From Bugula neritina (Eukaryota; Animalia; Bryozoa), in the NCBI GenBank assembly GCA_964035545.1, contig OZ037765.1, forward strand, positions 34,868,080-34,932,079: 64,000 nucleotides of DNA, read 5' to 3'. Shown here piece by piece: positions 7,937 through 51,553 of this stretch (positions are counted from its first letter, which is position 1; each line of letters opens with the position of its first letter). The notes below the pieces were generated by a model that saw only the letters and a list, made by a program, of their open reading frames with translations, did no database searches and was not told the origin of the DNA. A program made the position numbers and the translations under genes.

Positions 7937-7985
7937 ATGGGTCAACGTAAATCTCTACTTCCACCTCCACCTCCACCTCCACCAG
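7937..7985 (+). CDS. Gene 2 first coding exon, MGQRKSLLPPPPPPPP (exon starts 7885)
   Basis: Acceptor ttgttacag at 7884, in-frame stops upstream of the ATG, phase-1 donor G|GTTAGT; homologous exon at 63212-63516. Confidence 0.65.
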
Positions 7986-10900
7986 GTTAGTAAATATAAT
8001 TTATACACAGTGTGTCAAATTAATTCTGTAAAAAGTTAGTAAACACTGAATGAGTTTCAGTGATAAGGAAAGTTTCACTGGTTGTATTCAGTGTAACTGG
8101 CCCCGTATGATATATTTATTGTGTACTTGCTGATAAACTTGCTGGTAAAAACTAAATAAAATAAAAGAAGAGTTATATAAATGATTGCATGCATAAATGG
8201 GGTTAAAAATATCAAAATAATGCTCACAAAAACTATGTACAAGAAAAGCCATAAAAGTGTTTATTACAAAATAATAATTCAGATGATATAATAATATGAA
8301 TGAAATTAACCAACCTCTTGGGTCTTTCATACACAGCGCCAATAAATTATATTGAACAACCAGAATAAAATGATACAATTTTGCTGCCAACTAATTTTAA
8401 TAAGTTTACCAAGGATCTATATACTATGGCTCCTGTTACTGTATCAGGCAAAAGTATTGTCCCTAACATACCACAATGATTGTGTCCCAAAACATAGTGA
8501 ACATTCACTGGGTAGCCCCAGGGTACCAACATAGCCTAGTAGAGGTAGAACAAGAATAACAGCCGCCTCAACCACAATGACTTGACCACAGATCTAATAG
8601 TCAGCACAAGGCAGATGAGTGAGGCCTGCTGCTGTATGTCACCTAAACATAAATAGGAAGTTAATGGGGTCAATAGTTATTTATAGTGGGTAATGAGATC
8701 AATAGTTATTTATAGTAGGTAATGAGGCCAATAGTTATTTATAGTGGGTAATGAGGTCAATAGTTATTCACCGGCTTTCCATGTACCGATCTCAGATCGA
8801 TCTCGCTGAGATCGATCTGAGAAATGTGCTGATCAGATCGATCGTTTTTCCATGAGAGTGTCAGATCGATCTAGCGGAGTTGCCTCCTCTTAAGTGAAGA
8901 GTACTTTAATATTATATTTTTTAACCCACCTGGGTGATTCAAGCTAATGCTTTTGAAAAAACAAAATTTCCATAGTCTAAAATTCAGTGCCAGCTATAAA
9001 CTCTACGCAGTAAAGCTTTTAGTAAGAAGTAATTTAGCCAACTTAAGATAATTCATTTTAATATTTTAGTTTGACAGCTTATATAAAATTGATAGCTGTT
9101 GTGCAGATTATTCATAAACTTACAGGACTATTGGGCTTAAAAATAAGCAGCAAATAACTAATGAAAGTAAGTTTTACTAGCCATTTAAATTCAATTTAAA
9201 TGCTCCTACTTTTTCCACTTTCTACCGTCTATAATTTTATATAATTGAGTTTGTTTAATCATAGTACTGAAAGTCAAAGTTTTGGCATCTGAAAATGTGG
9301 CTATAGTAATTATTAAGTAATTTGCTTAGTAATTACCAATAAATTATCATTTTTATTAGCGGCGACATTTTAGCGAACAGTCTTTTTCTATTTCTCAGAT
9401 CGAACTTTCGTCTTTCCATGACCTTATTGCCTTGAGATCGATCTGAGTTCGAGCTCTACAGACCGACCAGCTCAGAACGACTGAGATCGATCTTTAGCGT
9501 CTTTCCATGGATCGATCTCAGCGAGATCGATCTGAGATCGGTACATGGAAAGCCGGTGATTTATAGTGGGTAATGAGGTTAATAGTTATTTATAGTGGGT
9601 AATGAGGTCAATGGTTATTTATAGTGGGTGATGAGGTCAATAGTTATTTATAGTGGGTAATGAGGTCAATAGTTATTTATAGTGGGTAATGAGGTCAATA
9701 GTTATTTATAGTGGGTGATGAGGTCAATAGTTATTTATAGTGGGTAATGCACAACCAGTTATAACAATCACGGGCTTTCCATGTACCGATCTCAGATCGA
9801 TCTCAGCGAGATCGATCTGAGAAATGTGCTCAGATCGATCGTTTTTCCATGAGAGTGTCAGATCGATCTCGCCAAAGTTGCCTCCTCTTAAGTGAAGGAT
9901 ACTTTAAAAGTATAATTTGTTCACTTATTTGAGTGATAAAACCTACTACTGTTGAAAACAAGATGGTCGTAGTCTAAAATTTGATCCCAGCTATAAACTG
10001 TACGCAGCAAAGCTTTCAGTGTATGGTAATTTGGCCAATTTAAAATGATTAATTTTAATTTTTTAGCTTGACAGCTTATATAAAGTTAATGGCTGTCTTG
10101 CAGATTATTAATAAACTTACAGGACTGTTAGGCTTAAAATTACAAAGAAAATAGCTAATGAAACTAAGTTTTAATAGTCTTTTAAATTCGATTTGAATTC
10201 TCCAATTTTTTTTACCTTCTACTGCATATAATTGAGTTTTCTTAATCATTGTACTGAAAGTCAAAGTTTTGGCATCTGAAAAGGTGGCTATCATAATTAT
10301 TTAACACTTTGCTTAGTAACTATCAATAAGTTATCATTTTTATTAGCAGACAACATTGTAGCGTGCAGTCTTTTTCTACTTCTCAGATCGATCTGGCGTC
10401 TTTCCATGGTCTTATTGACATGAGATCGATCTGAGTTCGAGCTCCACAGACCGACCAGCTCAGATCGACGGAGATCGATCTTTGGCGTCTTTCCATGGAT
10501 CGATCTCGCTGAGATCGACCTGAGATCGGTACATGGAAAGCCGGTGATTCAGAAACCAAAGTTTTTGTCATCTCACAGTTGCAGTACATCTTCTGTCTAT
10601 AAAAGCTTGTGGTGTGAGTTTACGTTGCAAACAAAAGAAAACGATAACTTAATATACATACACACACGCGCACGCATGCACGCACACACACTTATATTCA
10701 TATAAGCTAAACACAGAGAGAAATATTACTGCAGTGCTTGCACTAAAGTTGTTCAAAGAGCCTTTTATTGTTGGTATAGCCTGCACCACACCTCTAATAG
10801 TTGTTAGACCTGCACTTATTTTGATGAAATTGAAAATTAATCCAATTAGTGTAAGCTGAAAAATATTTTGTAGTAGCTCTGAAACCACTTAGTTGTTAAG

Positions 10901-13900: not shown

Positions 13901-16900
13901 TACAATAAAATCCACATTACTATACTCTCATACTGGTTAGAAGTTATGACAAGTTAGTTCAGAGTGATCAGTAATAATTTTTGCAGAAGCTTATTTCCAA
14001 CAAAAATTAGAGCAGCATGGAACATTTATAAGTTCAGCTTTGAATATAACTTAGTTCAGCATTGAGCATATCTAAGATCATCATTGAACAGAAATAAGAT
14101 CATCATTAAACATATATAATATCACTATTGAGCATAAATAAGATCACCATTGAACATATATAATATCACTATTGAACATAAATAAGATCACTATTAAACA
14201 TATATAATATCACTATTGAGCATAAATAAGATCACTGTTGAAAATATTTAAGCTCACCATTGAACATATATAAGATCACCATTGAACATAACTTGGCTCA
14301 TTGTGATAAATACAAAGAATCAACTTCACAACTCTTTATATCAACATTGATCTAACATACTATTCACTGTGAACAGTACCTGACACTAATTTCTATTCAC
14401 TGCTGGTCAATTTAGGAATCCAAAAAACGAGCTGTTTTAGTTGTCAGCTAATGTTCACTCTAACACTAATATTTCTCTCTGTGAAGTTGAGGTATTTCAA
14501 CATGATTTACTGGCCAGTGGCATACTGTGTATAATCAGTTAGTCAAACTGATTATTATTATTTATGAAGTGGTGGATATTTTGTAGAGAAGTACAGTGTG
14601 TGGTTCAACACATCCAGTATAGATGGGGCTGATGATGAGTGGATGTGGAAAAGTACTACACCCTACACTATAGAAGAGATCAAGAAGAAAAGTAGACATC
14701 ATACAGTTACTCATGTTAGACTGGTGTATGACATTCCTCCAAATATCAACACACTGTTTCCTCATCTCACACATCTGAGGGTATCTGGAGTATACAGGAA
14801 TGCTGCCTGGACCAGGTATGATATTGTGTCCAACACATGCAGTATAAGAGAAGAAAATGAGAAGTTCTTGTCAGTGGTGAAGTTTGAACCCTTACAGTAG
14901 TAAATACCCCCTTATCCACTTTACCAGCAGACTATACTTAAATATTAGGTGAATACACACTACACAGAGTACTCCCACCTATTCATACTGTTAGCTAGTA
15001 TTTAGTGACTATTCATACTGCTAGCTAGTATTTAGTGACTATTCATACTGCTAGCTAGTATTTAGTGACTATTCATACTGCTAGCTAGTATTTAGTATTA
15101 TAGTATAGAATGATACTGTAATATATATAATATCCCATCACCGAATCATCTATCTAGTTCTCAATCTATCATATATTAGTATTTAGGTTATCTTTAGAGT
15201 TATCTTTGTTTTCATATCTGTATGTTATGTTACAGCATATCTTCACTGAAGAATCTTGAGGTATTGGATATATCAGATAATAACTTATCTGACGGTCTAC
15301 CTGACAATATATTCACATCCTTACTATCATTGAGAAGGTTGTACATGGTGAGGTGTAAACTGTCAACTCTACCAAACAGGTGTGTATTATATTATAGTGT
15401 AGAATGATACTGTAATTTAAATAATATCTTATCAGTGACTCAGCAACTGTCTGGATACATAGCAAAGGTTTCTACAATTAACACTCAGGTTGAGGATATT
15501 CTGTTGAGACTAGAGCTAAACTGTCAGGTCAGCGTGTAGCATTTAAGCCATTTTCTATGATAATTTTTTAATTTTGTGTATTCCCCCCCAATTGCATTTT
15601 TGTTGGTTAGAAGAGATAGGATTTCTACTTGATAGCTTACCATGTGTACAGTACTAATTCCTGTGTACTCTGAAGCTAGGATATTTCAGATCAGCTATCA
15701 GATTTACAAATTGTTAGATGCTACAGAATTTGGGGTTTAGAGTTCAGACAATAGTTTGTATACAAACACTGCACCCTACGACCCCAAGCTTTGTGCTGCA
15801 TTCATCAAATCCCATCAGCTTTTATCCCATGCAGTTGGTAGTTGTTGAGTGCTGATTGGCTGATTTGTTCTACTTGTATCACGTGCTGCAAGGCCGAATG
15901 TTTTCTCTTTTACTGGAAGTTCATTTATTCAGTTTAATAATTACAATTATAAACATGAAGGATGGTTTGCCTTCTTCCATCTATAAGTACAACATATAAT
16001 TGGTTGTTGAATGCAAACAAGTCTGACCCTCCTACCTGCCAGGGGCATATTGAAGTGAACCTTTCAACCATTGGTTGGTGAGTAATATCTCTGTGCATAA
16101 CACAGATGTTGCAGGATTTAATTAACTTAGCCACATCTCTACACAGGACTGGCCACCAGAAGTGGTGCTGAGCCCTCACTCTACATTCATGTACCCTCTG
16201 ATGGCCCTTGTGGCACATTTCTAAATATCCTGACTGTAAAGACTAGGGAATATACACTCTGGACTTGTATATCAGCATATTATTATAAGCTGGTAAATAA
16301 TGTAGTACTGTAAAAAGCTGTGTTAGCCCACCTCTCAGACTGCTTCCATTTTTGGTCGTGCAAATTCTATTACTTTTATACTGATAGGGTCTGAGTTTGT
16401 AGTTTTTAGTCTCGTTTCTAATATATATTATCATAGAAGTTAGTAGTCTCTATAATAGAACTTACATATGACTCAATGTCACCATTTGATTCCTCTAGGG
16501 CATAATTTCACAGTATCTCGTCCTCAGACATAACACTTATGTACCAATACGAGATACATTACATCATAATTAAATGTTGTCTATCGGCAAAAATTTTGCA
16601 GTAGCCAATCATAGTACTATAACAGGGCAGTCTGAGTGTAGTATCTCGTTTATCCGCATAATTATAATAGCCCGTAGTTGAAGATGGAGTTGGAAGCTTT
16701 TCAAATACCTCCCGCATATAATAGCATTTATGCTAGTCCTTAAAACTAAATAAACATTATGGTAGACCAATAATCATGAAAGCTCTACTCATTTGTAACT
16801 GGAGGATTTGTAGCACCACAATACTAAATTTCTTGCATTGGAGGTGCTTAGGCTGTGTTGTCATAGTGATATGTACTTATTGGGGCTTGGTATAAAATTA

Positions 16901-25900: not shown

Positions 25901-28900
25901 TTTTTATATGCTGATGCTAATAAGTAGTAATTTTAAATTTGATAACTCATGAATGATGAATAAGATAACAAGAATAATACTGGACCTAGTAATACTATTA
26001 GTCCTACTACTAGAATTTTATTACCTTATATGTGTAATACGCTTCTTTTAGTAATACTGCTGGTCAAAGTTAGTGTTAATCATATTTATAGTTAAATGTT
26101 GAAGGAATAAATTAGTTCATAACATAAACATTGCACTATGTGAATATGAAATTTAATATGAATATCCCAATTACACTTGCTGTTGCTCTTTAGAGACTAG
26201 AGTTATAACTTATAACTATGATATAATAATGAATACCATTATTTTAACTAATCATATTACTCAGCTAATGTTAATGATAACTGTAAGTCTAAAAACCATT
26301 ACGGTTATAGGTATCACTGACTAATATTATTAATAATATAATCATTCGTTTTATACTTGTACCTATATTTATATTTATACTTATACCTATTTTTATACTT
26401 ATGATCATATCTATACTTTCACGTATGCTTGTACATTTTACTCATAGTATCAGGGTGGCAATCGAAAAGTCATAATCGATATGCTAATCTAATAATAGAA
26501 CCAACTGCACTAATATAGTTGTATATTATTATTATTGTTGATTGACCATAGTTTTTTAGCTGGTGTAACCTTTTACCATTGGCCTAGTTATACTAGGCTG
26601 AAATGGATAGAACTTTCCTCAGGATGTGAGCTTATCCTGATCCTAGTAAGGGTGTCTGCTGAATTAATGAGCATTTGTTTTCAGCTACTCCAAGTAGTGT
26701 CAGCCAGTCTACAATCTTGTATAAAGCTCCAAAGGCTCCAGTTACAACGGGATGACTTTTTTGATGTTTTCCAAAGGCGGGTTTATTCTAGTGCTAAATT
26801 CTGATATTTTCCTAACTTTTCGAATTTTTTTTCTTTTACTCTGTAGTTAACAGGGACTGTGATATCAATTATCGTTGTTTCAGCATTATGCTTGTCAACT
26901 ACTAATATATCGGGTCTCCTAACTTTGATGACTACGTCAGTGTGTATGTTAAAATCTTACAAGGTTTTTACACTATCATTTTCCACTACTGATTCTGCTT
27001 GATGGCCGTACCAATTCTAACTTTTCTGAAACCCACGAAGTTCACACAACTACTATTGAAATTATCAATGCCAAAAGGTTGTGTTTTTTCTTATATTCTC
27101 CTTCTGCTACCTTCTCAAACTCACTCAATACGTGCATCGAAGTTTTGTCTCTTGCGTTACACATTCCTCACTTCTTGCTACCCTGTTCTCTCATCATAGC
27201 CACTTTATAATTTCTAGTAGTGAATAGTTGATCTTGCGCAGCTGTCAGCAGTCCTTCTGTTTTCCTTTTCCTTCCCTTCTGCTAAAATACAGCCTGCCTA
27301 CATCTGCTCTCGGATAGGGTGCACGGTTTGTTGTCATTAGCTTCCTTGTCTCCCAGTCCATATTTTTTAGCTCATGAAACAGTTCAGTCAAGTATTCTAG
27401 CTGTGTAATGCACTGCTGTTACTGCCCATGTGTTTATTGCTTTGATTGTGTTCTCACCATTCAGTTTTGAATCCAGAACTTTTCTTATTTGTTTGTAGTA
27501 CTCCTTGATCTTATTTTTCATTTCATATATTTGTATTCTATCAATCTCAAGAACTCCTAGATATTTATACGGCTTCTCACCCAGATCTTTGATTACCTGT
27601 TCATCAGGCAAACTGATTCCTGTATCCTTGATTTTCTTTCCCTTTCTCATAACCAGTGTGGCACATTTTTTAATCCAAATTTCATTTCTATATTCCTTGT
27701 GAAGATCCCGGCAGTGTTTACCAAAGCTTCCAGTTCTGACTTTGATTTCCTATTTACCTTCAGGTCATCCACATATAGGAGATGGTTTGTTATCTGTCTC
27801 GTCGAAATTTGCATCATTGAGCCGCTTCTGTCATGCGAATCGGTAGTTGGAGAAAAGGGATAGAGATAAAGAGTCTCCTTGGAAAATTCTTAGTTTGATC
27901 TTTATTTCTCCTATCTTTTCTTCCAGGTATTTCAGTTGTGTTTTCCAGGTTTCATGCTTTTTCTTATCAACCTTATGACATTAATTGCTATTCCAGTTGT
28001 TTGCATCGTTTCTAAGATCTAATTTCCTTGTCTTTACATATGCTCCAATTTGTTGCTAACTTTATTTAGTCATTCTGCATTGGTATTATTTTTAGTTGGC
28101 TGACCCCATATATTTTATCAGAATGCTTTTGATTTCCTTGTCAGGTGCCTCTTTAGATGTACATTCATTTTCTCGTAATTCTTGATAAAAGCGCTTATCA
28201 TTGTAAACATTGTGTTCTGATTATATTGATCAACTCATTCTGTATATATGTTTATCTTCTGGCTTACAGCTCTCAGGTTTTGCTTCAGTTTTTCAATCAC
28301 TACACCACACTCTTTGTTCTTTATCCTATATTTTTCTTCAACCATTCTTCTCAATGAATCATTGTAAGCTCTACTTTTTCACTCTGCTATTTTACTTAAG
28401 TCTGATCTAATTTCTTTTTATTTCTTCTGCAGTCGTATTTTCCATACTTGTACATTGTCAGTTTTTCTTTTTCCTTTTTGTTACACACTTGTTCTGTTAC
28501 TATTTTTCGCACAAGCCATGGTGGTGTTATTAAGCTCAATGGTATTAATAATCTCAACACAGTTTAGCACATCATTAATCTGTTTTACTGCCTGTAGTAA
28601 TTTGACCCTCTCAATGTGCCTAAGGGCTCTTAGTGTTGGTCGATCATTAGATAGTTTGTTATGCTCATTTATAATTTTTCTACTAACACTTTTTCCACCT
28701 CTGAACTAGGTTTTCTTAAAATTCTCATGGCTGATTTATATGCTATCTCATGTTGTACTATAACATCCTCTATTTGCAAATTTAGCTCTTCATTATCTTC
28801 TTCACCAATTGATGTGCCTAGTTCTTGCAAGGTTCCTTCTTCAATCTTATGGAGTTCTTCTTCCATAAAATGCTTGTGTTTCTTCATAGTTCTTGCTTAA

Positions 28901-34900: not shown

Positions 34901-37900
34901 AAACTTTTGCATACATGAGTTGAATAAAATCATTGAGAGTTTTATGAAGGTCTATTTGTGTATAGGTAGCCCTATGTCACAACTCAAGTTTTTAGATTTT
35001 ATGCAATTTGTGGTGCAAAGTTGCAAATAAAAACCTTATTTTAATAATACTTAGACATATGCAAGCAATAAAGATAATGAAAAAAATGCTATAGTTGCTA
35101 ATTAGCTAATATTACTTGCATATGATGCAAATATTTGTATGCATGCATGTTTAGTTTGTTAGCATTGGTTAGATATAATTGAATATATAGATTTGATGTG
35201 GAGATTGAAGAAAATCAATATGTTGTGTTCTATATACAACAACAGTTTTTACATTGGTTTGTTAATTACTTCATAAATCATTTATTACTTCATGCAATAT
35301 TTGTTCCTGCAACTTTGCAGAGTGGCAAAATGCATTTCAAAGACATATATTAAGTGATTTTAATTATACTAGAATTTTCAAACTAAGAATTTTTGTGGAG
35401 TTTTCTTCTTCCTAAGACATATGTGGCAATTGAACACATAATAAGTTGTGGGCTACAACTCCTTTATACAACCTTGCAAGAAATTATGCAGCTATTAATT
35501 AAATAGAAAAGGAATTATTGAATTTATTTATTCAACATTATTAGTATTTTATAAATATTTGTTGCATTTAATTAATGAGCATAAAATTTGTTTTACAAAT
35601 ACTGTAATTAACAGCATGGTAAAAATATATTATATATACTGGTATATATTTTGTATTGTATTAGATTTAGGCTACATTGCAAGACATTTATAATTAAAAT
35701 GAGTTAATGGCTAAGTTTAAATATCTTCGACTTATAGATTACATTTTTATGTGCTATAAAAATTTAACTCGTTTGTTACGACATTTCTCCCTGCATAAAA
35801 GCAAAACTTACTGCAAGAAATCCTTAGCTAGAAAGATAAATAATAATTTACTTCAATTACATCAAAAGCTAATATCAGCCAGCATTCTATAAATAATGGT
35901 AATTTACCTAGTGTAATTTTTCTTAAACTAGCTAAGCTTGCTTGGTACTTTAATAAGTTTATTGGCATAGTGTATTATTTTATACTTATATATTTTTAAG
36001 ACTTTAAGGAAAATGATGTTTTAGCTTCGTTATTCCTAATGCAAGCCTTATAAATTTACAATATATACTAAAATATTATATTTGTAATCAGAAAGAAAAC
36101 AAATTACTTTCATAAACTTATAATTATTGCATTCTGTTATTGTTAATGCTAGAATAACAAATTGAACACGGCATATGCTTCGCTAACCAGATGCTTTTAA
36201 ACGGATTAAAAATAATTTGTCAATTTCTAATTATGAGGAACAAACTCCTCGATAGTTTCTACATTTGCGCATGATTTTATCAAGATAGGCTTGTTTTTGT
36301 GTCAACCTGTAGCCAGTGCAACTATACTTTATGTAACGAGTAAAACAGACTCATTTCAAAGTACACAGTCTAAAGGGTAGGAATTACTACAAAGAAAAGT
36401 GCCGGTTAAAAGTTAATTATAATTGGAAATAAGGTGAGATATCAGTCAGAAATTAAAAAGTGTCAACTAAAAAGGTGTATTTTTATTTCTTTTTGGCTTA
36501 ATGAAAATGTTTTTTGAGGAAGAAGTACGAGAAACATCTAGGAGGGGTTCATATCCACCACTGGCGACTACCTGTTTATTGATGAAGAACTATCCAATGA
36601 TAGTACAGTATTATGGTCTTTTGCCTTATAATTGGCTTTGATTTTTTTATGTCTAATTACGAGATACTAAACAGATGCAAAGTATGTTGTGCATAGGCAG
36701 TTTTTTTATGTCTCTAAACAACATTCTAGGAAAATATATACTGGATTCCTCACACTGCTTGCAATGTGGGTAGGCCTACTCAGTGTCTCAGCTCTGAACA
36801 TGTCTTTGCCATTTCTTTGCCTTTATCAGTGTTCTCCTCTCCCTAGATAATATCTCTTGGTTCTCACTGTAAATATATATCTCTGTTTCTTGAGCTCACT
36901 CTAGCACTCAATACCAGCCATATGAAACTCAGACAGATTAGAATGTTGCTGTCCTCACCATGTAACAGATATTTCATACCTGTATGTTACGTTACAGTAT
37001 GTCTTCACTGAAGAATCTTGAGGTATTGAATATATCATGGAATAACCTATCTGAAGATCTACCTGACAATATATTCACATCATTACTATCATTGAGAAAG
37101 TTGCACATGTGGGACTGTGAACTGTCAACTCTACCAAACAGGTGTGTATTATATTATAGTGTAGAATGATACTGTAATATATATATATAATATCTCATCA
37201 GTAACTCAGCAACTGTCTGCATACATAGCAAAGGTTTCTACAGTTACACTCAGGTTGAGGATAGTCTGTTGAGACTAGAGCTAAGCTGTCAGCGTGTCAG
37301 CATTGTTCATGAGATTTTTTAATTTTGTGTATTTTCCGCCTGCTTTTAGCTGTCAGTCATCAATGAAAGTGAATTGCATTTTTGTTGGTTAGAAGGGATA
37401 GGATTTCTACTTGATAGCTTACCATGTGTACAGTACTAATTCCTGTGTACTCTGAAGATAGGATATTTCAGATCAGCTATCAGAGTTACAAATTGTTAGA
37501 TGTTACAGAATTTGGGGTTTAGAGTTCAGACAATAGTTTGTATACAAACACTGCACCCACGACCCCAGGCTTTGTGCTGCATTCATCAATTCCCATCAGA
37601 TTTTATCCCATGCAGTTGGTGGTTGTTGAGTGCTGATTGGCTGATTTGTTCCACTTGTATCACGTGCTGCAAGCCCGAATGTTTTCTCTTTCACTGGAAG
37701 TTCATCTATTCAGTTTTAAAAGTTACAATTATAATTATGAAGGGTGGTTTGCTTTCTTCCATCTATAAGTACAACATATTGTTGTTGAATGCAAACAAGT
37801 CTGACCCTCCTACCTGTCAGGGACTTGAAGTGAATCTTTCAACCATTGGCTGGTGAGTAATATCTCTGTGCATAACACAGATATTGCAGGATTTAATTAA

Positions 37901-40900
37901 CTTAGCCATATCTCTACACAGGGCTGGCCACCAGAAGTGGTGCTGAGCCCTCACTCTACATTCATGCACCCTCTAATGGCCCTGATAGCACATTTCTAAA
38001 TATCCTGACTGTAAAGACTAGGGAATATACACCCTGGACTTGTACATTAGCATATTATAAGCTAGTAAATAATGTAGGACTGTATAAAGCTGTGTTAGCC
38101 CACCTATCAAACTGCAACCATTTTTTGGTCGTGCAAATTCTATTACTTTTATACTGATAGGGTCTGAGTTGGTAGTTTTTAGTCTCGTTTCTTATATTTA
38201 TTATCATAGAGGTTAGTAGTCTTTATGATAGAACTTACATATGACTCAATGTCACCATTTGATTCCTCACACTGCATGTAATGTGGGTAGGCTTACTCAG
38301 TGTCTCAGCTATGAACATGTCTTTGCCATTTCTTTGCCTTTATCAGTGTCCTCCTCTCCCTAGATAATATCTCTTGGTTCTCACTGTGAATATATACCTC
38401 TGTTTCTTGAGCTCACTCTAGCACTCAATACCAACCATATGAAACTCAGGCAGATTAGAATGTTGCTGTCCTCACCATGTAACAGATATTTCATACCTGT
38501 ATGTTATGTTACAGCATGTCTTCACTGGAGAATCTTGAGGTATTGGTAATATCAGGGAATTACCTATCTAAAGGTCTACCTGACAATATATTCACACCCT
38601 TACTATCATTGAGAGAGTTGAACATGACGCACTGTGGACTGTCAACTCTACCAAACAGGTGTGTATTATATTATAGTGTAGAATGATACTGTAATATATA
38701 TATATATAATATCTCATCAGTAACTCAGCAACTGTCTGTATACATAGCAAAGGTTTCTACAGTTACACTCAAGTTGAGGATATTCTGTTGAGACTTAAGC
38801 TAAGCTGTTAGTAATTTCTATGACATCACAGCCGCCATAAGGCTTTGGTTTACTGGTCATAAAATAATTTAAGCTTTCGTTAGTTTCTGTATTTGAATTT
38901 TTTAAAACTTAGCTCAAAGTTTGGGTATCTAATAAATTTTATCTAGCAAAAACAGAGGCAGAATAAGTGGTAGTACGTGGAATTATCATTGGACGTCAAC
39001 ACTGACTCAACCATGTTCTTTTACACTTTCATTCATCTGGTAGAATTGAAAGCACAATTGTTTTTTTTGTTCAAGGCAAGACATCTTTGTACAGGAAGGA
39101 GTAGTTTTTTAGTCAATTCCATGGAAGAGTAGTGATGTGCACATTGGATAAAGTTATGTTAGCAGATTTAACTGAATACTGGTATTCATTTTCACCCTTA
39201 CTATTGCAAGTTATGTAGATAATACCAAATCTAATTCTAATTAGTTGAGTATTAGATACTACCCAGCTGCAGGCTAGGATAGCTATACAATAACTATTTG
39301 CAGTGAACAGTAATATATATCATTTGGTATAAACAGAAATGATTATTAAGATATGATTATTAGATTGTGTGAACAATGCATAGAATACTGTGATATCTAG
39401 TGACAACATTTACCAGATGACAACTAAATATATATTTCTATATCAACAAACCCTGCCTTTGTTTGAACTCTCTATTATTTGTGATGTTTGCCAAAGCAGT
39501 TCATTCAAAGGTCAAGGACACATTCACCGGCTTTCCATGTACCGATCTCAGGTCGATCTCAGCGAGATCGATCCATGGAAAGACGCCAAAGATCGATCTC
39601 CGTCGATCTGAGCTGGTCGGTCTGTGGAGCTCGAACTCAGATCGATCTCATGTCAATAAGACCATGGAAAGACGCCAGATCGATCCGAAAAGTAGAAAAA
39701 GACTGTGCGCTACAATGTTGTCTGCTAATAAAAATGATAACTTATTGATAATTACTAAGCAAAGTATTAAATAATTATGATAGCCACCTTTTCAAATGCT
39801 AAAACTTTGACTTTCAATACAATGATTAAGAAAACGCAATTATATGCAGTAGAAGGTAAAAAAAATGGGAGAATTTAAATTGAATTTAATTCACTATTAA
39901 AACTTAGTTTCATTGGCTATTTTCTTTATAATTTCAAGCCTAACAGTCTTGTTAGTTTATTAATAATCTGCAAGACAGCCATTAATTTTATATAAGCTGT
40001 CAAGCTAAAAAATTAAAATTAATTATTTTAAATTGGCCAAATCACCATACACTGAAAGCTTTGCTGCGTAAAGTTTATAGCTGAAATTAAATTTTAGACT
40101 AGGACCATCTTGTTTTCAACAGTAGTAGTTTTAATCACTCAAATAGGTGAACAAATTATACTTTTAAAGTATTCTTCACTTAAGAGGAGGCAACTTCGCG
40201 AGATCGATCTGACACTCTCATGGAAAAACGATCGATCTGAGCACATCTCTCAGATCGATCTTAGCGAGATCGATCTGAGATCGGTACATGGAAAGCCCGT
40301 GATTGTTTAACTATAATATATAGCCATTTTATAACTTTCTATATTACCCATTATTGTAATGAATATATTTGCAATGTCAACTTCTAGACATTATCACTCA
40401 ACAAAGATGGTGCTCTTATTTCTGCATAAAATCAAATTTTTGATATAAAAGCTATCATGTGATAATAAAGATGCTTCAACTTGTACTGACAGTGTATAGT
40501 GTTCTGTTCACTAGCATACAGAGTCTACAGAAGTTGGAGGAACTGGACATATCATATAATAACTTCACGAGTTTACCATCTCCTGTGTGCACACTCAGTA
40601 GTCTGCAGAAACTGGATATATCCTCCAATAAGTCCCTGACATCCTTAGATCCTGAGATACTACAGCTAACTCAACTTCGTACACTGTATGTTGGATATTG
40701 CTCTGCTCTCACATCTCCTCCAATAGAAGTATGTGAGAGAGGAGTAGATGCTGTGAGACAATACTACACAGACTTGGCTAAAGGTGCTGGTAGAAGTCTT
40801 CCATTTGCTACTATAGCTGTACTGGGTAATACGATGGCTGGGAAGACCAGTCTAATCAGAACATTACAGAATGCTGACAGAAAGAGAGTTCTGACCAACA

Positions 40901-43900
40901 GAGGGCCAGATGCTGTGAGAGATGAGACAACAAAGGTGTTTAATGTTGAAGAGGTGGAGGTGGATGGTACAGTTCTCCGTGTCATTGATATGGGAGGCCA
41001 GGAGGTCTACCATATCACCTATCAACTGACACTGAGACAGAATTGTATTCCAGTCATAGTAGTCAACATGGAACAGTATGAGGAGATCTCAAGTGATTCA
41101 ACACACAGAGAAGCTGTTAGAAGATTAGCCTTTGATTACATGTCTCACCTCTATCTGGCTAACCCAACTCTTGGTGCTCCAAAACTTATCTTCACACATA
41201 AAGATAAGTTTCAAAGTGCAAAATTCCAAAAGCTTCAAAAAAATTTCCTTGGAACTTCAAATCAACTGTGTGAGGAGATGATTAGGGAAGAGAAAGCATT
41301 GGGTGGACAATTTGCTCAAATCAAACATTTCAGTGAATCAACTGAAAGAGTCTTTCTTGATGAAGACATTTATGAGGTGGGGAAAGATGATAAGTATGGG
41401 GTGTTTGACCTGATCAAGGAGTCTCTTCTTCAAAGCAGTCAACATTTTGTGAAATCTTTACCTCTGGTTTGGGAGGAAGTGAATGAAAAAGTGCTGTCTA
41501 TTCCCTCTGTGTACAGCACCTTTGATGAAATACTGAACTACGTACAAACCGAACTTCAACACATTGAGTCAAGTCAGCTGGACATAATCCTCACATACAT
41601 GCATGACTGCGGCAAAGTCTTGTGGTATAAAGATATCAGCTCTCTCCGCCCATACATATTCCACAAAATTTCACAAGTCACCAAACTTCTCTGTGTCTTG
41701 TATCATCATGATGCTAATATATGGCAGAGTAGAGTTAACAAGTTCCAGCCATATTTTTCAGAAAATGGGGTACCTGTTGAAAAAGAAGACTTTGAGAGAT
41801 TTGTTAATCATTTCACTGAGACTGGTTTGATGATGCAATGCCTTCTCACTCATCTGGTTAAACAAGAAACACCATTTACCAGTCTGGAAGATGTAAAAGT
41901 TGCTGTTTGTTTGCTTCAAACCTTCCGTTTGTTATATGGTCCTTTACCTGCTGATTCCAAGGAGCCCTGTTTTATTGTTCCTCAGTTTGCTAGGGACCTC
42001 TTTGATACCTCTTACTCCTCGCCAAAAAACGTGCTCCTTCATGTTGAAACTAAATTCAATGGTCTAGCCCTGCCACACTATGTCTATCAGCAGATGAGTG
42101 TTGGTTTGTTGGAGTTGTTTCCAGACGAGTTTGCTGTGATTAAGGTGAGAAGAAATGGAGCCAATGTCTATCAAGATGGGATCTACACACAGCTGGTACA
42201 CGACTACAAATCCCGAAAAGTGTTGCTCTACGCGTCATCTAATGCTGTGAACATCAGCAGAATGTGGGAGAGACTTATCAGCACCAACAACAACATCCTC
42301 AGACATGTTCTAGAAACTTGGACAGCGAGTAGAGCTGTCACTACATGCTACTGTTCTCACTGTCTTCTGCTAAGCCTCCCTTGTCCTAAGAAAGTGCTCA
42401 ATCCTCCATGGTGTCTTCGTACCTTGAAACATTTACCACCAGATGGGAAACTGTGTAGCGGATCTTCAATGACGTTGTGCCATGATGAAGAGATTCCCAG
42501 TGCACTTTTATACCCATGTATGTTCACTTATGTTATAGTCTAGCAGTTTGAGAAAAATATTCTCTCAGTTAGCATGAGTATTAGCAACTTTCCAACAAAT
42601 TTTATATACATTATGTTTCCTTGATTTGTCATCATCATTTTGAACTCCCAAAAGTCTAAGACTTCAAAAAATGTTTGAAATTGAATCATTTTCTAGGTCA
42701 GACATTGTCAGAGAGCGAGACTGCTATGTTAACAGAAGTTGTCAAAGAACTGAAAGTTAGAGGAGCTCAAGAAATGTCAGCTCCACCTGGTAAATACTCA
42801 GAATTGTGTTTCTGCACCAAATATATTATTTTAACTTATATGTTTAATCTTCATTCGGTTTGTTATAAGAAACCTCTACACGATAGCTGAAGAGCATTTT
42901 ACTGGTTGTCATAGCCTACTATACTTCTTGTTTTAAACCTCCCGTCATTTTGTTTATTATGTTTTACTTGTACTCTGTTTGTACTCTATAGCTGCAAACA
43001 GTAGCCAATCAAATCTCTTGACCACCCCAATAACAGCCAATGAAGATCTCAGTGATCTCTCTGATGATGAGGAGAATCTGTACCCTGATGGAAAGGAAGT
43101 TGAAGATATGAAGTTTATAAGACTCAGACTGAATCCCACCAGTAACCCAAAGATAAGACAGCTGTTCTCAAACACTGACAAGGTGCTCATATATTAAACG
43201 CTACTACGAGTATTTAACATTCTTGCCAGTTGTTTAGTTCAGCAGTAACAAGTATTTCTCTGTTACATCCAGGTGTTTACTATGACTAGAAAGAGAGGAA
43301 GAGCTCTGATAATAAACAACATGAACTTTGATAAGAGACCAGATTTGTGTAGGAAAGGTTCAGATGTTGATGTTGAGAATATGTCTGCCATGTTGAAATC
43401 TCTCAAGTTTGATGTTGTGACACACACAGACTTGAAGGCTGAGGTATGTTTTATTAGGAATATTAAATACAATATTTCATTTTGATTTACTGTTTAAAAG
43501 TTATCTAACAGGGGTTAAATTCCTAAAAGTATTTTTATTAGTTGTAGCAACTTTTCCAAATTTTGATAAAACTTCTGCCATGTTATCTACAATATTTGTA
43601 GGAAATGATTTCTGCTGTAAAATCTGAGGTGACAAAAGAGGAACACGAAGATCTGGGATGTCATGTGTTGGTTATCATGACTCATGGAGGGCTAAACAAC
43701 CACATCTATGGTACAGACCTGAAACGAGTCCAACTAACAGATGTGTATGACCTTCTGACCCCTTTGAACTTCCCAGGAATGGCTGGCAAACCAAAGGTTG
43801 TTATACTGGAAGTCTGTAGTGGAGGTAATTATTTGCTACAGGAAAATGAATACTATTTTTGTTTACACAGTCTCTTTTTAGATAACATTATTCAGATATT

Positions 43901-46900
43901 TATATAGTACATCAAGTGAAGGTACTGTACTTGTAATAGAAATTTAGGTAAATATTATCCTTTTGCACTGTTGGTAGTGGATTGTCCCCTCCTGTAATCT
44001 ATGTTATTGATATTGAAATATTTTCTTGATATATATATTACATTATACTAATATTTTAATACTATAATTAGAAGTTAGTTTATAACCGTGATACACTATA
44101 TTAGTTGACCTCCAAAGGGTAGAATTAGGAAGTTATATTGTAGTTGTGTAGTAGTAGCTTATTAATGTATACAGATGTCTACCTTACAAGTATCTCCATT
44201 TTCTACAATTCTATCCATCATTTTAGTATTGTAGTACGTGCTTCATGTTGGTGTGAGGCAGTTTTAAACTAACTACTGTTGTGTTACAATAGATATAAAC
44301 TAACATTAGCATTGGATATAGATTGAGTATGAATAGGACCTGTTTTATGTTACAGAGAGGAATATAGGACTAGTTTTATGTTACAGAAAAGAGTATAGTA
44401 TAGGGCTAGTTTTATGTTACAGAGAGTAGTATAGTATAGGACTAGTTTTATGTTACAGAGAGTAGTATAGTATAGGGCTAGTTTTATGTTACAGAGAGGA
44501 GTATAGTATAGGACTAGTTTTATGTTACAGAGAGGAGTAGTATAGTATAGGACTAGTTTTATGTTACAGAGAGGAGTATAGTATAGGACTAGTTTTATGT
44601 TACAGAGAGTAGTATAGGACTAGTTATATGTTACAGAGAGTAGTATAGTATAGGACTAGTTTTATGTTACAGAGAGGAGTATAGTATAGGGCTAGTTTTA
44701 TGTTACAGAGAGGAGTATAGAACTAGTTTTATGTTACAGAGAGTAGTATAGTATAGGACTAGTTTTATGTTACAGAGAGGAGTATAGGACTAGTTTTATG
44801 TTACAGAGAGTAGTATAGTATAGGGCTAGTTTTATGTTACAGAGAGGAGTATAGTATAGGACTAGTTTTATGTTACAGAGAGTAGTATAGTATAGGACTA
44901 GTTTTATGTTACAGAGAGGAGTATAGTATAGGACTAGTTTTATGTTACAGAGAGGAGTATAGTATAGGGATAGTTTTATGTTACAGAGAGTAGTATAGTA
45001 TAGGACTAGTTTTATGTTACAGAGAGTAGTATAGTATAGGACTAGTTTTATGTTACAGAGAGTAGTATAGTATAGGACTAGTTTTATGTTACAGAGAGGA
45101 GTATAGTATAGGACTAGTTTTATGTTACAGAGAGGAGTATAGTATAGGACTAGTTTTATGTTACAGAGAGTAGTATAGTATAGGACTAGTTTTATGTTAC
45201 AGAGAGTAGTATAGTATAGGACTAGTTTTATGTTACAGAGAGTAGTATAGGGCATATGATGAAGATATAAACTGACTACTCATATGTGTACAGTGTATGC
45301 TATCTTCCCTCCATATATTATTATCGGAAAAATTTAAAAAATGTTGCCTTCTATTATTATACTTTCAAACTATAAGCTGTCTCAAAATTAGAGATTAAAT
45401 GCAAAACTAGATGTGTTTGAGTTGATTTACTTATCATATCAAATGAATATAAAGTTTGATGTCTGTATTACAGAGAGGAGTGATTATGGCCAAAGAGGTA
45501 TAGACAGATTTGATATCGGAGAATCACAAAAGGAGGGGGAGAGTATCTCTCCTCCACTTGCTAAAGTTCCTGGAGACAAAAAAGCTGAGGCTATGAATAG
45601 ACTGAACTATGATGACCTGCTAGTAGTGAAATCAAGCATGGAGTGTAAGTAACGCACATGTAATACTACTTGATATTATACTGTGTGTAATATACTATGT
45701 GTAATATACAGTGTGTAATATACTGTGTGTAATATACTGTGTGTAATATACCGTGTGTAATATACTGTGTGTAATATACTGTGTGTAATATACTGTGTGT
45801 AATATACAGTGTGTAATATACTGTGTGTAATATACTGTGTGTAATATACTGTGTGTAATATACTGTGTGTAATATACTGTGTGTAATATACTGTGTGTAA
45901 TGTACTGTGTGTAATATACTGTGTTATACTGTGTGTAATATACTGTGTGTAATATACTGTGTGTAATATATACTGTGTGTAATATACTGTGTGTAATATA
46001 CTGTGTGTAATATACTGTGTGTAATATACTGTGTGTAATATACTGTGTGTAATATACTGTGTGTAATATACTGTGTGTAATATACAGTGTGTAATATACT
46101 GTGTGTAATATACTGTGTGTAATATACAGTGTGTAATATACTGTGTGTAATATACTGTGTGTAATATACTGTGTGTAATATACTGTGTGTAATATACAGT
46201 GTGTAATATACTGTGTGACACATACTGTGTCTAATATACTGTGTGTAATATACTGTGTGTAATATACAGTGTGTAATATACTGTGTGTAATATACTGTCT
46301 GTAATATACTGTGTGTAATACACTGTGTGTAATATACTGTGTGTAATATACTGTGTGTAATATACTGTGTTATACTGTGTGTAATATACTGTGTGTAATA
46401 TACTGTGTGTAATATATACTGTGTGTAATATACTGTGTGTAATATACTGTGTGTAATATACTGTGTGTAATATACTGTGTGTAATATACTGTGTGTAATA
46501 TACTGTGTGTAATATACTGTGTGTAATATACAGTGTGTAATATACTGTGTGTAATATACTGTGTTATACTGTGTGTAATATACTGTGTGTAATATACTGT
46601 GTGTAATATATACTGTGTGTAATATACTGTGTGTAATATACTGTGTGTAATATACTGTGTGTAATACACTGTGTGTAATATACTGTGTGTAATATACTGT
46701 GTGTAATATACTGTGTGTAATATACAGTGTGTAATATACTGTGTGTAATATACTGTGTGTAATATACAGTGTGTAATATACTGTGTGTAATATACTGTGT
46801 GTAATATACTGTGTGTAATATACTGTGTGTAATATACAGTGTGTAATATACTGTGTGACACATACTGTGTCTAATATACTGTGTGTAATATACTGTGTGT

Positions 46901-49900
46901 AATATACAGTGTGTAATATACTGTGTGTAATATACTGTCTGTAATATACTGTGTGTAATACACTGTGTGTAATATACTGTGTGTAATATACTGTGTGTAA
47001 TATACTGTGTGTAATATACTGTGTGTAATATACTGTGTGTAATATACTGTGTGTAATATACTGTGTGTAATATACAGTGTGTAATATACTGTGTGTAATA
47101 TACTGTGTGTAATATACTGTGTGTAATATACTGTGTGTAATATACTGTGTGTAATATACTGTGTGTAATATACTGTGTGTAATATACAGTGTGTAATATA
47201 CTGTGTGTAATATACTGTGTGTAATATACTGTGTGTAATATACTGTGTGTAATATACTGTGTGTAATATACTGTGTGTAATATACTGTGTGTAATATACA
47301 GTGTGTAATATACTGTGTGTAATATACTGTGTTTAATATACTGTGTGTAATATACTGTCTGTAATACACTGTGTGTAATACACTGTGTGTAATATACTGT
47401 GTGTAATTTACTGTGTGTAATATACTGTGTGTAATATACTGTGTGTAATATACTGTGTGTAATATACTACGTGTAATATACTGTGTGTAATATACTGTGT
47501 GTAATATACTGTGTGTAGTATACTGTGTGTAATATACAGTGTGTAATATACTGTGTGTAATATACTGTGTGTAATATACTGTGTGTAATATATACTGTGT
47601 GTAATATACTGTGTGTAATATACTGTGTGTAATATACAGTGTGTAATATACTGTGTGACACATACTGTGTCTATTATACTGTGTGTAATATACTGTGTGT
47701 AATATACAGTGTGTAATATACTGTGTGTAATATACTGTCTGTAATATACTGTGTGTAATATACTGTGTGTAATATACTGTGTGTAATATACTGTGTGTAA
47801 TATACTGTGTGTAATATACTGTGTGTAATATACTGTGTGTAATATACTGTGTGTAATATACTGTGTGTAATATACTGTGTGTAATATACTGTGTGTAATA
47901 TACTGTGTGTAATATACTGTGTGTAATATACAGTGTGTAATATACTGTGTGTAATATACTGTGTTTAATATACTGTGTGTAATATACTGTCTGTAATACA
48001 CTGTGTGTAATACACTGTGTGTAATACACTGTGTGTAATTTACTGTGTGTAATATACTGTGTGTAATATACTGTGTGTAATATACTACGTGTAATATACT
48101 GTGTGTAATATACTGTGTGTAATATACTGTGTTTAATATACTGTGTGTAATTTACTGTGTGTAATATACTGTGTGTAATATACTGTGTGTAATATACTGT
48201 GTGTAATATACTGTGTGTGATATACTGTGTGTAATATACTGTGTGTAATATACTGTGTGTAATATACTGTGTGTAATATACTGTGTGTAATATACTGTGT
48301 GTAATATACTGTGTGTGATATACTGTGTGTAATATACTGTGTTATACTGTGTGTAATGTACTGTGTGTAATATACTGTGTGTAATATACTGTGTGTAATA
48401 TACTGTGTGTAATATACTGTGTGTAATATACTGTGTGTAATATACAGTGTGTAATATACTGTGTGTAATATACTGTGTGTAATATACTGTGTGTAATATA
48501 CTGTGTGTAATATACTGTGTGTAATATACAGTGTGTAATATACTGTGTGTAATATACTGTGTGTAATATACTGTGTGTAATATACTGTGTGTAATATACT
48601 GTGTTATACTGTGTGTAATGTACTGTGTGTAATATACTGTGTGTAATATACTGTGTGTAATATACTGTGTGTAATATACTGTGTGTAATATACTGTGTGT
48701 AATATACTGTGTGTAATATACTGTGTGTAATATACTACGTGTGTAATATACTGTGTGTAATATACTGTGTGTAATATACTGTGTGTAATATACTGTGTTT
48801 AATATACTGTGTGTAATATACTGTGTTTAATATACTGTGTGTAATATACTGTCTGTAATACACTGTGTGTAATACACTGTGTGTAATACCCTGTGTGTAA
48901 TATACTGTGTGTAATATACTGTGTGTAATATACTGTGTGTAATATACTGTGTGTAATATACTGTGTGTAATATACAGTGTGTAATATACTGTGTGTAATA
49001 TACTGTGTGTAATATACTGTGTGTAATATACTGTGTGTTTTCCTGTAGCATTCATAGCAAAGGTTCACCCTGTGTATGGATCTCTAATGATTAGAGCTCT
49101 TGTATCCTCCATGTATAAACATGCCTGTCACCATGACCTCTACACTATATTCAAACAGGTGAGTATTGTTACTGGCCCCGTATGAATTAAACCAGGATTT
49201 CCAAACGCAGAAGTTTATTGGTTATACTTGTTGGTAAACTTGCTGATAAATTCTCTGATAAACTTGCTGTGATAAACTTGCTGGTAAAAACTACATAAGA
49301 AAGGCAAAAGTTATATAAATGATTGCATGCATATAAATGTGGTTAAAAATATTAAAGTAATGCTCACAAAAACCATAAAGTAAATTTATTATAAAATAAT
49401 AATTCAGATAATAATATGAATAAAAGTAACTAACCTCTTGGGTCCTTCATAAACTGTGCCAGTAAATAACATATTGTCGAACCAGTAGGAGAATAAAATA
49501 ATAAGTACAGTTTTGTTAAAGAGTGCTGCCAACTGATTGTATTAAGTTTGTAAAGTGTTTATATACTCTGGTTGTTGTTACTGTACCAGGCAAAAACATA
49601 TTGCATAAACGACTATTGTCCCTAAAAATTACCACAATGATTGTGTCCCAAAACATAGTAAACATTCACTAGGTAGCCTCAGGGTACCAACCCAGCCCGT
49701 ACAGGTAGGGCAAGAATGACAGCCACCCCAACCACAATGACCTGACCACAAATCTAATAGTCAGCACAAGGAAGATGAGTAATGCCTGCTGACGTATGTC
49801 ACCTAAACATAAATAGGAAGTTAATGGGGTCAATAGTTATTTATAGTGGGCAACACACAACCAGTTACAATAATATAACTTTACTAAATTAGCTGCCTAT

Positions 49901-50212
49901 CCTTAGGATTATAAACAGGAAGAAGTGCTGTAGCAAGTAGTAATAAAAATATCACGTGACAAGTTTAATTGGCTGAATATGAAAATGCTATATTGGGTAG
50001 ACTTCGAGATTAGTAACTGTATTATTTCACCATCCTCTGTAAACAATCTATAAACTGTTATTCAGGTACAGACTAAAGTGAGAAAACTTTGCTTAGATAA
50101 AAATCTAGAGAGTGGAGGACAGTTGGTTGTAGTCTGGGATACTCTCACTCATATGAGAAAACTTTACCTGTTTCCTGGGTTTAATGGCCACAAAAGAGAA
50201 GATGACTTCTAA
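7937..50212 (+). CDS. Gene 2: LRR-Roc-COR (ROCO)-caspase fusion protein, ~1272 aa; exons 7937-7985, 14587-14815, 15236-15379, 36998-37141, 38515-38658, 40515-42517, 42697-42789, 42992-43182, 43273-43443, 43602-43824, 45474-45644, 49049-49158, 50066-50212
   Basis: Every junction is GT-AG and phase-compatible; summed length is 3819 nt with no internal stop. Motifs: LxxLxIxxN LRRs; Roc GNTMAGKTS, DMGGQEVY, THKD; COR; caspase RGRALIINN, RKGSDVD, MTHG, EVCSG, RKLYLFP. The 5' exons are less certain than 40515-50212. Confidence 0.8.
8092..8690. repeat. Dispersed solo-LTR-like repeat (copies 8092-~9763 interrupted by a minisatellite and MITE; 49167-49869; partial ~4790-5115)
   Basis: Shared ccacaatgattgtgtcccaaaacatag...tagtcagcacaagg; the 49167-49869 copy has TGTTACTGG...CCAGTTACA ends; no clear TSD. 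Confidence 0.6.
8672..9748. repeat. 29-bp minisatellite (aatagttatttatagtgggtaatgaggtc)n split by a MITE
   Basis: About 3 copies before 8769 and about 6-7 after 9558; only a single copy in the homologous repeat at ~49832. Confidence 0.9.
8769..9558. mobile_element. Non-autonomous DNA transposon (MITE), copy A
   Basis: Long TIR caccggctttccatgtaccgatctcagatcgatctc; ATT duplicated at both flanks. Confidence 0.9.
9769..10546. mobile_element. MITE, copy B
   Basis: Same TIRs and internal sequence; flanks AAT/ATT. Confidence 0.9.
13390..13706 (-). mobile_element. Two decayed tRNA-derived SINE heads
   Basis: Reverse complements begin ...tgtagtggtgagtgcgcctgcttgca... and ...gtgtaatggttagcacacctgtgtgcaa... 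(A-box-like D-arm); no intact cloverleaf. Confidence 0.45.
14030..14295. repeat. ~21-bp minisatellite (aagatcactattgaacatata-like)
   Basis: About 12 degenerate tandem copies. Confidence 0.8.
14587..14815 (+). CDS. Gene 2 exon encoding an LRR N-cap-like region
   Basis: Acceptor tttttgtag; phase 1 in, phase 2 out at ACCAG|GTATGA; VTHVRL...IPPNINTLFPHLTHLRV is LRR-like. The 3' boundary is uncertain. Confidence 0.6.
14979..15096. repeat. 30-bp minisatellite (attcatactgctagctagtatttagtgact), ~4 copies
   Basis: Direct inspection. Confidence 0.9.
15236..15379 (+). CDS. LRR cassette exon A (144 nt, two LRRs, phase 2-2)
   Basis: tatgttacag| ISSLKNLEVLDISDNNLSDGLPDNIFTSLLSLRRLYMVRCKLSTLPN |gtgtgt. 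Confidence 0.85.
15690..16490 (-). mobile_element. Ty3/gypsy integrase fragment inside the LRR duplication unit (second copy ~37480-38265)
   Basis: HKGHQ...RAQHHFWWP...CNIC zinc-binding motif and PWQVGGSDLF; frameshifted. Confidence 0.8.
20461..20760. repeat. GA-rich polypurine tract
   Basis: About 300 nt of (GGGAGA/GAGA)-type sequence. Confidence 0.9.
21650..26535. repeat. Cryptic low-complexity AT-rich region with 3/6-nt periodicity, including (TAG)n at 25330-25470
   Basis: Runs such as tattac, atcata, ttttag, agtagt; no credible ORFs. Confidence 0.6.
26540..29225 (-). mobile_element. Decayed non-LTR retrotransposon, R4/Dong-like (RT plus restriction-like endonuclease)
   Basis: Fragments RRYSREDNKVVMKC..GYRK, KPYKYLGVLE, AINTWAV, RPDILVVDK, IDITVP; many frameshifts; (TAT)n runs at both flanks. 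Confidence 0.8.
31290..31690. mobile_element. Degenerate hairpin (MITE-like inverted repeat)
   Basis: aaatacacctaaataatcaagg / ccttgattatttaggtgtattt and ttagtacacactg / cagtatgtactaa arms. Confidence 0.6.
36998..37141 (+). CDS. LRR cassette exon B (144 nt, phase 2-2)
   Basis: MSSLKNLEVLNISWNNLSEDLPDNIFTSLLSLRKLHMWDCELSTLPN, with near-identical splice contexts. Confidence 0.85.
38515..38658 (+). CDS. LRR cassette exon C (144 nt, phase 2-2)
   Basis: MSSLENLEVLVISGNYLSKGLPDNIFTPLLSLRELNMTHCGLSTLPN, same splice contexts. Confidence 0.85.
39525..40301. mobile_element. MITE, copy C (inverted relative to A and B)
   Basis: Close to the reverse complement of copy B; ATT/ATT flanks. Confidence 0.9.
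40515..42517 (+). CDS. Gene 2 large exon: LRRs, Roc GTPase and COR (ROCO/MFHAS1-like core)
   Basis: LTSPPIEVCERGVDAVRQY (typical LRR-Roc linker), P-loop LGNTMAGKTSL, DMGGQEVY, FTHKD, COR-type YMHDCGKVLWY and FIVP, C-terminal CYCSHC cluster. Confidence 0.92.
43273..50212 (+). CDS. Caspase (peptidase C14) domain exons of gene 2
   Basis: Five domain exons with the same intron positions and phases as gene 1; THG and EVCSG dyad. Confidence 0.9.
44336..45250. repeat. 36-bp intronic minisatellite (gttttatgttacagagaggagtatagtataggacta), ~25 copies
   Basis: Direct inspection; gag/tag variant units. Confidence 0.97.
45676..49037. repeat. 14-bp satellite (tactgtgtgtaata)n, ~240 copies, filling one intron
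   Basis: Direct inspection. Confidence 0.98.
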
Positions 50213-51458: not shown

Positions 51459-51509
<51 letters not shown>

Positions 51510-51553
51510 GTATACGAGAAACATTGTTATTTATTACTTTATTAGGTAAAGTA

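Follow-up and report, generated by a model that had tools for sequence, protein, structure and literature searches.

We analyzed a window of 64,000 nucleotides from the bryozoan Bugula neritina (assembly GCA_964035545.1, contig OZ037765.1, positions 34,868,080 to 34,932,079 of the forward strand). This stretch of AT-rich animal DNA contains a tandem array of genes that combine leucine-rich repeats (LRRs), a Roc GTPase domain, a COR domain and a caspase. The gene considered here extends from 7937 to 50212 (Table 1). By splice-site arithmetic, its 13 exons sum to 3819 nucleotides, or 1272 amino acids and a stop codon; all introns are GT-AG and all exons are stop-free in phase. A preliminary description of this DNA had proposed that the reading frame is open for 1272 amino acids and that the Roc-COR exon is joined, in phases 1, 1 and 0, through two short linker exons to a caspase domain about 750 bp away. 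Both proposals were borne out, with 756 bp between the end of the Roc-COR exon and the first caspase exon. A reading as two interleaved genes was rejected because the 21.6-kb intron contains no additional LRR cassette, exon 2 or Roc-COR copy.

Part of the stretch is represented in 18 sequencing runs from six studies. In contigs from three probable RNA runs, belonging to three studies, the joints 42517|42697, 43182|43273 and 43443|43602 occur with GT..AG ends, whereas a probable DNA run has none of these joints and carries the introns instead. The contigs were placed at 88% likeness, and the short side of the key joint measures 28 nucleotides (guide value 31). The COR-to-linker and linker-to-caspase splices of the preliminary description were thus recovered, and we confirm that COR is spliced into the caspase, giving one LRR-Roc-COR-linker-caspase protein. 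The predicted 42789|42992 joint between the linker exons fared less well: its exact form is present in only one RNA run, and all three RNA runs share an exon 7-8 joint with an in-frame acceptor 18 nucleotides upstream, where this allele lacks AG; that acceptor belongs to another allele or a paralogue. In one RNA run, a contig has a loose end at 43824 whose sequence corresponds to the beginning of exon 11. The RNA joints cover exons 6 to 10, and those of exons 1-6 and 11-13 rest on splice-site arithmetic rather than on reads. Exon 7 shows intron-like depth in the DNA run and a tblastn match in only one of 11 loci, so the joint into exon 7 suggests this gene, or one of its close alleles, as its source.

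The same architecture recurs elsewhere. Relatives of exon 6 form 33 JGI clusters at 38-89% identity, with more in ENA and Logan. Eight traced JGI matches lie on contigs labelled AY690838, which we take to be a Bugula neritina accession; the JGI source is presumably Bugula or a close cheilostome. At each of the 11 distinct loci, Roc-COR is followed 0.86-1.84 kb further on by the first caspase exon. The Watersipora subatra RefSeq set contains about nine full-length LRR-Roc-COR-caspase models (for instance, XP_067947674.1 and XP_067948342.1), and KAF6039231.1 of B. neritina is a partial model of the family. The upstream caspase exons in the window are 88-100% identical to those that follow Roc-COR in two other loci (L001 and L009). 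It is extremely improbable that the LRR-ROCO part and the caspase are two genes lying side by side, with the joined model an artefact or minor read-through. An unspliced exon 6 does continue for eight codons to a stop, no contig spans the gene, and several W. subatra models stop short of the caspase, but the joints occur in three RNA studies, the linker is conserved, the phase-1 donor is present in 11 of 11 sequences and the RefSeq fusions are independent. The best explanation is that the gene belongs to a bryozoan family, expanded in tandem, of intracellular receptors that combine an LRR array, Roc-COR, a flexible tether and a caspase-fold protease in a single chain. In one locus (L003:7248-7416), the catalytic exon appears to carry a deletion and frameshift not seen in L002, which is identical otherwise; this is a null allele or an assembly error.

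Table 1. Exons of the gene and of its tandem neighbours (positions in the window; aa, amino acids)
Feature	Positions	Strand	Description
Upstream tandem paralogue, five caspase exons	62..2133	+	U-type (HACSG, Arg341 kept); intron positions as in this gene
Exon 1	7937..7985	+	Start codon, MGQRKS, poly-Pro run; aa 1-16; paralogous exon at 63264
Exon 2	14587..14815	+	N-terminal cap region, aa 17-92
Exon 3	15236..15379	+	LRR cassette, 144 nucleotides, phase 2-2, two repeats
Exon 4	36998..37141	+	LRR cassette after the 21.6-kb intron; tandem duplicate of the exon 3 unit (89% over 1.3 kb)
Exon 5	38515..38658	+	LRR cassette
Exon 6	40515..42517	+	Three LRRs, Roc GTPase, COR-A/B; aa 237-904
Exon 7	42697..42789	+	Linker exon, 93 nucleotides, phase 1-1
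Exon 8	42992..43182	+	Flexible tether with S-D-L-S-D (aa 956-960), then ordered pre-caspase segment
Exon 9	43273..43443	+	Start of caspase large subunit; Arg1026 is the Arg179 equivalent
Exon 10	43602..43824	+	Catalytic His1084 and Cys1128; EVCSG where QACxG is expected; Glu1126 at Gln283
Exon 11	45474..45644	+	Intersubunit linker (contains Asp residues) and start of small subunit
Exon 12	49049..49158	+	Small subunit; Val1193 at the Arg341 position
Exon 13	50066..50212	+	End of small subunit and stop codon
Downstream tandem paralogue, exon 1	63264..63516	+	MGQRKS, expanded Pro-rich repeat, phase 1

Sensor, switch and tether

Pfam searches were run on each exon rather than on the joined 1272-amino-acid protein, and folds were taken from a model of exon 6 and a model of a W. 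subatra homologue. Exons 2, 8, 11, 12 and 13, each searched alone, gave no Pfam match. The N terminus encoded by exon 1, MGQRKS, fits the MGxxxS pattern of possible N-myristoylation. A homologue of exon 2 lies 5' of the LRR cassettes in three other loci (L002, L004 and L005). The number of 144-nucleotide, phase 2-2 LRR cassettes varies by paralogue, from three here to six in L009. Across 17 cassettes, the beta-strand face (positions defined from the LRR motif) has a ratio of nonsynonymous to synonymous substitution rates (dN/dS) of 1.64, against 0.45 elsewhere (approximate pairwise values; permutation p = 1.5e-4), which shows an excess of amino-acid change on the concave binding face of the LRRs.

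Bryozoans are colonial and remodel their tissues. Instead of responding to pathogens, the family might recognize self or allotype ligands during colony fusion and rejection, or drive developmental tissue removal during metamorphosis or polypide regression; both the variable LRRs and the high copy number would also fit allorecognition. However, the family comprises dozens of paralogues, dispersed and with swapped effectors, and in this it looks more like pathogen-driven receptor families than like a single allorecognition locus; we consider this role very unlikely.

Exon 6 has a Pfam LRR match and a Roc match of 31 bits, above the cut-off of 27. The Roc motifs were located (G1, GNTMAGKT with K347; T375; G3, DMGG; G4, THKD) and are conserved among homologues. 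COR-A is weak in Pfam (17.3 bits, below the cut-off). Despite this score, a COR placed directly after Roc is supported by the AlphaFold2 model of exon 6 (predicted local distance difference test score, pLDDT, 90.5; predicted template modelling score, pTM, 0.88), whose fold matches LRRK1 (E = 7e-24) and C. tepidum Roco (6HLU, E = 1e-21) and also the isolated COR 3DPT. By both domain tests, the G1-G4 motifs of Roc and the COR that follows it, the protein is a ROCO. Pairwise dN/dS of 0.12-0.22 indicates purifying selection on Roc-COR. Toward the end of COR-B, all 88 homologues retain Cys850, Cys853 and Cys892, and the exon 6/7 junction creates a further Cys (42352-42519); these cysteines possibly constitute a zinc site. 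Among the exons scanned with Pfam, no protein kinase domain was present and neither NACHT nor NB-ARC gave a match; the NTPase is Roc.

The segment between COR and the caspase was examined in the model of the COR-caspase half of the Watersipora homologue. The exon-7 equivalent forms a high-confidence helix directly after COR, and the tether motif is located where a disordered stretch ends. The pTM of 0.51 means that no fixed orientation of COR and caspase is indicated. No CARD or DED was found in the exons scanned; the linker consists of the helix and the disordered tether. The phase-1 donor follows the same Pro in all 11 sequences checked, a candidate for exon 7 is present in every paralogue, models of both linker exons could be built for seven JGI paralogues, and the linker is under purifying selection. 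Nearly all Bugula-like and Watersipora members carry S-[DE]-[LVIC]-S-D in the tether, and we infer that the conserved S-D-L-S-D of this copy is a putative cleavage site.

C. tepidum Roco is dimeric in its GDP-bound or empty state, and GTP converts it to monomers (PMC5714945). One may then suppose that the ROCO part is an inhibitory or localizing prodomain, and that GTP-driven monomerization, membrane recruitment or cutting of the tether by another caspase frees a self-dimerizing caspase. The behaviour of the bacterial protein is in line with this idea, as are the possible N-myristoylation pattern and the conservation of the tether motif, within a disordered stretch, in Bugula-like and Watersipora members. 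Yet S-D-L-S-D could equally be a phosphosite of an acidic kinase, and a long flexible tether with no predicted fixed contact between COR and caspase fits proximity activation better than autoinhibition, which makes such a release mechanism quite improbable.

The protease end and its S1 pocket

Peptidase_C14 scored above the Pfam cut-off in exons 9 and 10. Taken alone, exon 12 shows a weak alignment to caspase-1 p10 (E = 0.06), and one homologue (P0074) covers positions 1-225 of the 233 in the Peptidase_C14 profile. The best PDB matches of the caspase exons are true caspases. The preliminary description had called this domain complete, which holds only in part. The His-Cys dyad is intact, with His1084 and Cys1128 aligning to the SHG and QACQG motifs of caspase-8, and the Arg179 equivalent is present, but the Gln283 and Arg341 equivalents are not. 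Arg179, Gln283 and Arg341 form the caspase S1 pocket for a P1 Asp (PMC2064784); here the first is kept, the second is Glu and the third is Val, so that two of the three residues are replaced. Nor is this the acidic pocket of metacaspases and paracaspases (Asp at 283, Asp or Glu at 341 and Leu at 179), as this copy has Glu, Val and Arg.

Two caspase types, about 45% identical, exist in the family. The U-type has HACSG and keeps Arg341, and includes the upstream neighbour. The E-type, to which this gene belongs, has E-x-C-S-G: in place of the QACxG pentapeptide, this copy has EVCSG and all E-type paralogues have E[VAT]CSG. All six E-type genes have Glu at Gln283; at position 341, three have Arg and the other three Val or Ile; His, Cys and Arg179 are kept in every E-type copy. 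Because of the altered pentapeptide and S1 pocket, we do not classify this copy among the Asp-specific caspases. Its residues make ordinary Asp-caspase activity doubtful and, with two of three pocket residues replaced, it may be something other than a death protease that cuts after Asp. Most comparisons of the caspase exons indicate purifying selection (dN/dS of 0.08-0.45, with one pair at 0.97).

The evolutionary histories of the two halves are discordant. On the Roc-COR tree, this gene joins two U-type genes (98/99), and its Roc-COR shows 86-87% identity to the Roc-COR of genes that carry the other caspase type. Approximately unbiased (AU) tests on that tree rejected the placement of either caspase type in one clade (p = 5e-5 and 0.0016). 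Scanning exon 6 with a sliding window revealed no internal breakpoint, and the likeness to U-type genes runs almost throughout. Given this discordance, the two caspase types have been reassorted on Roc-COR, unless the short-read contigs are chimeric.

These observations also bear on whether this copy is a cFLIP-like sensor or regulator that itself has little protease activity and would form a COR heterodimer with a canonical paralogue and activate or damp it, in the manner of paired sensor and helper receptors. The Glu shared by all six E-type genes and the Val or Ile in three of them favour such a role, as do the close likeness of its Roc-COR to that of U-type genes and the presence of a U-type gene directly upstream. 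In mouse caspase-12, Arg341→Lys alone was taken to predict a non-functional enzyme (PMC11121540). On the other hand, the dyad and Arg179 persist in all E-type genes, the caspase exons are mostly constrained and three E-type paralogues keep Arg341. We regard this role as unlikely.

Proposed mechanism and related systems

We propose that the gene encodes an adaptor-free innate-immune receptor in which the dimer state of the ROCO module gates the fused protease, a reading to which we assign a probability of roughly 55%. A non-self or damage ligand would bind the LRRs and shift the nucleotide state of Roc and the monomer-dimer balance of COR. Dimerized CORs would juxtapose two tethered caspase domains, as adaptors do for initiator caspases, and cuts at the intersubunit linker and the S-D-L-S-D tether would then stabilize and release the protease. 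Direct activation of the caspase by COR dimerization is plausible. Because the dimer of C. tepidum Roco is the GDP-bound or empty state, the switch could have either sign; by analogy with that protein, GTP would hold the dimer off and thus be the 'off' state under the dimer model. Given its altered S1 pocket, this copy probably cuts weakly or with another specificity, or depends on processing by a canonical paralogue such as the upstream neighbour.

The single-chain arrangement of sensor, switch and protease in the preliminary description is backed by the fusion itself, the family-wide linker exons and the diversifying LRR surface. The immune roles proposed for bacterial LRR-AP-GTPase-COR-effector systems and for brown-algal LRR-ROCO genes also favour the gated-receptor proposal. 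Several points weigh against the gated-receptor proposal: the polarity of the dimer is taken from a bacterial protein at about 15% identity, two S1-pocket residues are replaced, no single contig or transcript spans the whole gene, gene conversion among cassettes makes the pairwise dN/dS values approximate, and metagenome contigs could be chimeric and so mimic module swapping.

The preliminary description knew of no characterized animal protein with this architecture. As a domain order it is not new: it has been described in bacteria and is present in amphioxus, and a ROC-caspase is reported in Owenia, although we found no characterized animal example. Bacterial counter-invader proteins that join LRRs, an AP-GTPase (Roc), COR and an effector include an LRR-AP-GTPase-COR-caspase form (Kaur et al. 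2021, PMC8195603). They share the domain order, the fast-evolving LRRs and the many paralogues with differing effectors; the caspase is one of at least 24 C-terminal effectors and their function is predicted only. In contrast, the bryozoan gene is intron-rich, has a metazoan caspase (p20/p10, QACxG-derived) and swaps two caspase types.

In amphioxus, LRRs-caspase hybrids were proposed to link the recognition of pathogens directly to apoptosis (Zhang et al. 2008, PMC2575513). The searched text of that paper does not name Roc-COR, and the Branchiostoma floridae protein XP_002614028.1, an LRR-Roc-COR-caspase by Pfam, is not confirmed among its models. Unlike the bryozoan proteins, XP_002614028.1 has a canonical QACRG and lacks the bryozoan-type tether. 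It nests in an amphioxus ROCO clade whose other sampled members gave no match to the caspase profile, and a joint clade of amphioxus and bryozoan sequences, and with it a common origin of the fusions, was rejected by an AU test (p = 0.0036, with a long-branch caveat). The bryozoan fusion is thus probably independent.

A caspase with a ROC pro-domain was reported in Owenia fusiformis (Krasovec et al. 2024, PMC11463336). It is likewise an animal caspase behind a ROC domain, compared here by description only; the one gene is mentioned in passing in a study that gives no family or function and sampled no bryozoans. Brown-algal LRR-ROCO genes are candidate immune receptors (Teng et al. 2024, PMC11378527). 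They share phase-2 LRR cassette exons, diversifying selection and expansion, but are mostly effector-free (three have another peptidase) and have one repeat per exon, against two here.

The bryozoan proteins share the Roc-COR fold and G-motifs with LRRK1/2, DAPK1 and MFHAS1, and the databases label the Watersipora proteins 'MFHAS1 homolog'; they have no kinase or death domain, are fused to a caspase, are multigene and variable, and form a separate long-branch clade. The proposed logic of an LRR sensor, a nucleotide switch and a proximity-activated caspase resembles that of the initiator caspases of NLR inflammasomes and the Apaf-1 apoptosome. Here, however, the switch is a GTPase rather than a STAND ATPase, CARD, DED and PYD are lacking, the assembly is probably a dimer rather than a wheel, and the S1 pocket is altered. 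In Lingula anatina, XP_013419969.1 (P0147) is an LRR-Roc-COR protein with a weak C-terminal CARD match, an adaptor-using counterpart of the fused form.

Our search, which was thin on subscription journals, found no dedicated paper on a bryozoan or animal Roc-COR-caspase family, nor is one mentioned in the papers on amphioxus and bivalve caspases. The bryozoan expansion, the variable cassettes, the swapped caspases and the altered pocket are undescribed in the literature found. More tentatively, and with odds that we place short of even, bryozoans may have evolved, independently, a large class of innate-immune receptors whose platform is a ROCO GTPase in place of the NLR or apoptosome and directly gates a fused caspase, with recombination mixing variable LRR cassettes and interchangeable protease ends and with the E-x-C-S-G type, its S1 pocket remodelled, acting as a non-Asp protease or a paired sensor. 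If the gated-receptor proposal is correct, animals possess a route from LRR to caspase without NLR, CARD or DED, convergent with the predicted bacterial defence proteins and with amphioxus. Control of a fused enzyme by the Roc-COR nucleotide cycle is still debated for LRRK2, and a natural Roc-COR with a dimer-activated protease would read out directly which nucleotide state is 'on'. The E-type caspases (Glu283; Arg, Val or Ile at 341) offer a natural series on the loss or change of P1 specificity.

Repeats and mobile elements in the window

A short upstream open reading frame (ORF) lies just 5' of the start codon (7886-7915), and the same is found before the start of the downstream paralogue, near 63213. 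In that paralogue, the poly-Pro run of exon 1 has grown into a 54-nucleotide tandem repeat (63284-63514). Intron 10 contains a 36-bp array (44325-45250), and 241 copies of a 14-bp unit fill nearly all of intron 11 and reach the exon 12 acceptor (45677-49038). Long ORFs on the reverse strand at 44770-49068 were rejected as genes, being translated tandem repeats.

A non-coding element of about 790 bp, likely a miniature inverted-repeat transposable element, occurs three times at 84-95% identity: two copies sit in a 29-bp tandem repeat of intron 1 (8768-9559 and 9757-10547) and the third just before exon 6 (39524-40312). The 21.6-kb intron contains degenerate ORF fragments resembling a retrotransposon without long terminal repeats (26800-29150, reverse strand). 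A Ty3/gypsy-like long terminal repeat element lies between the tandem genes (55018-60515, reverse strand), with broken gag-pol ORFs, RNase H and integrase, and direct repeats of 246 bp at 55018-55259 and 60273-60515 (94%). On the forward strand, a 644-amino-acid reverse transcriptase ORF (52061-53995; Pfam RVT_1) is flanked by inverted 406-bp repeats (51463-51851 and 53999-54404, 94%); it ends in an apparent GIY-YIG endonuclease motif and is therefore probably a Penelope-like element.

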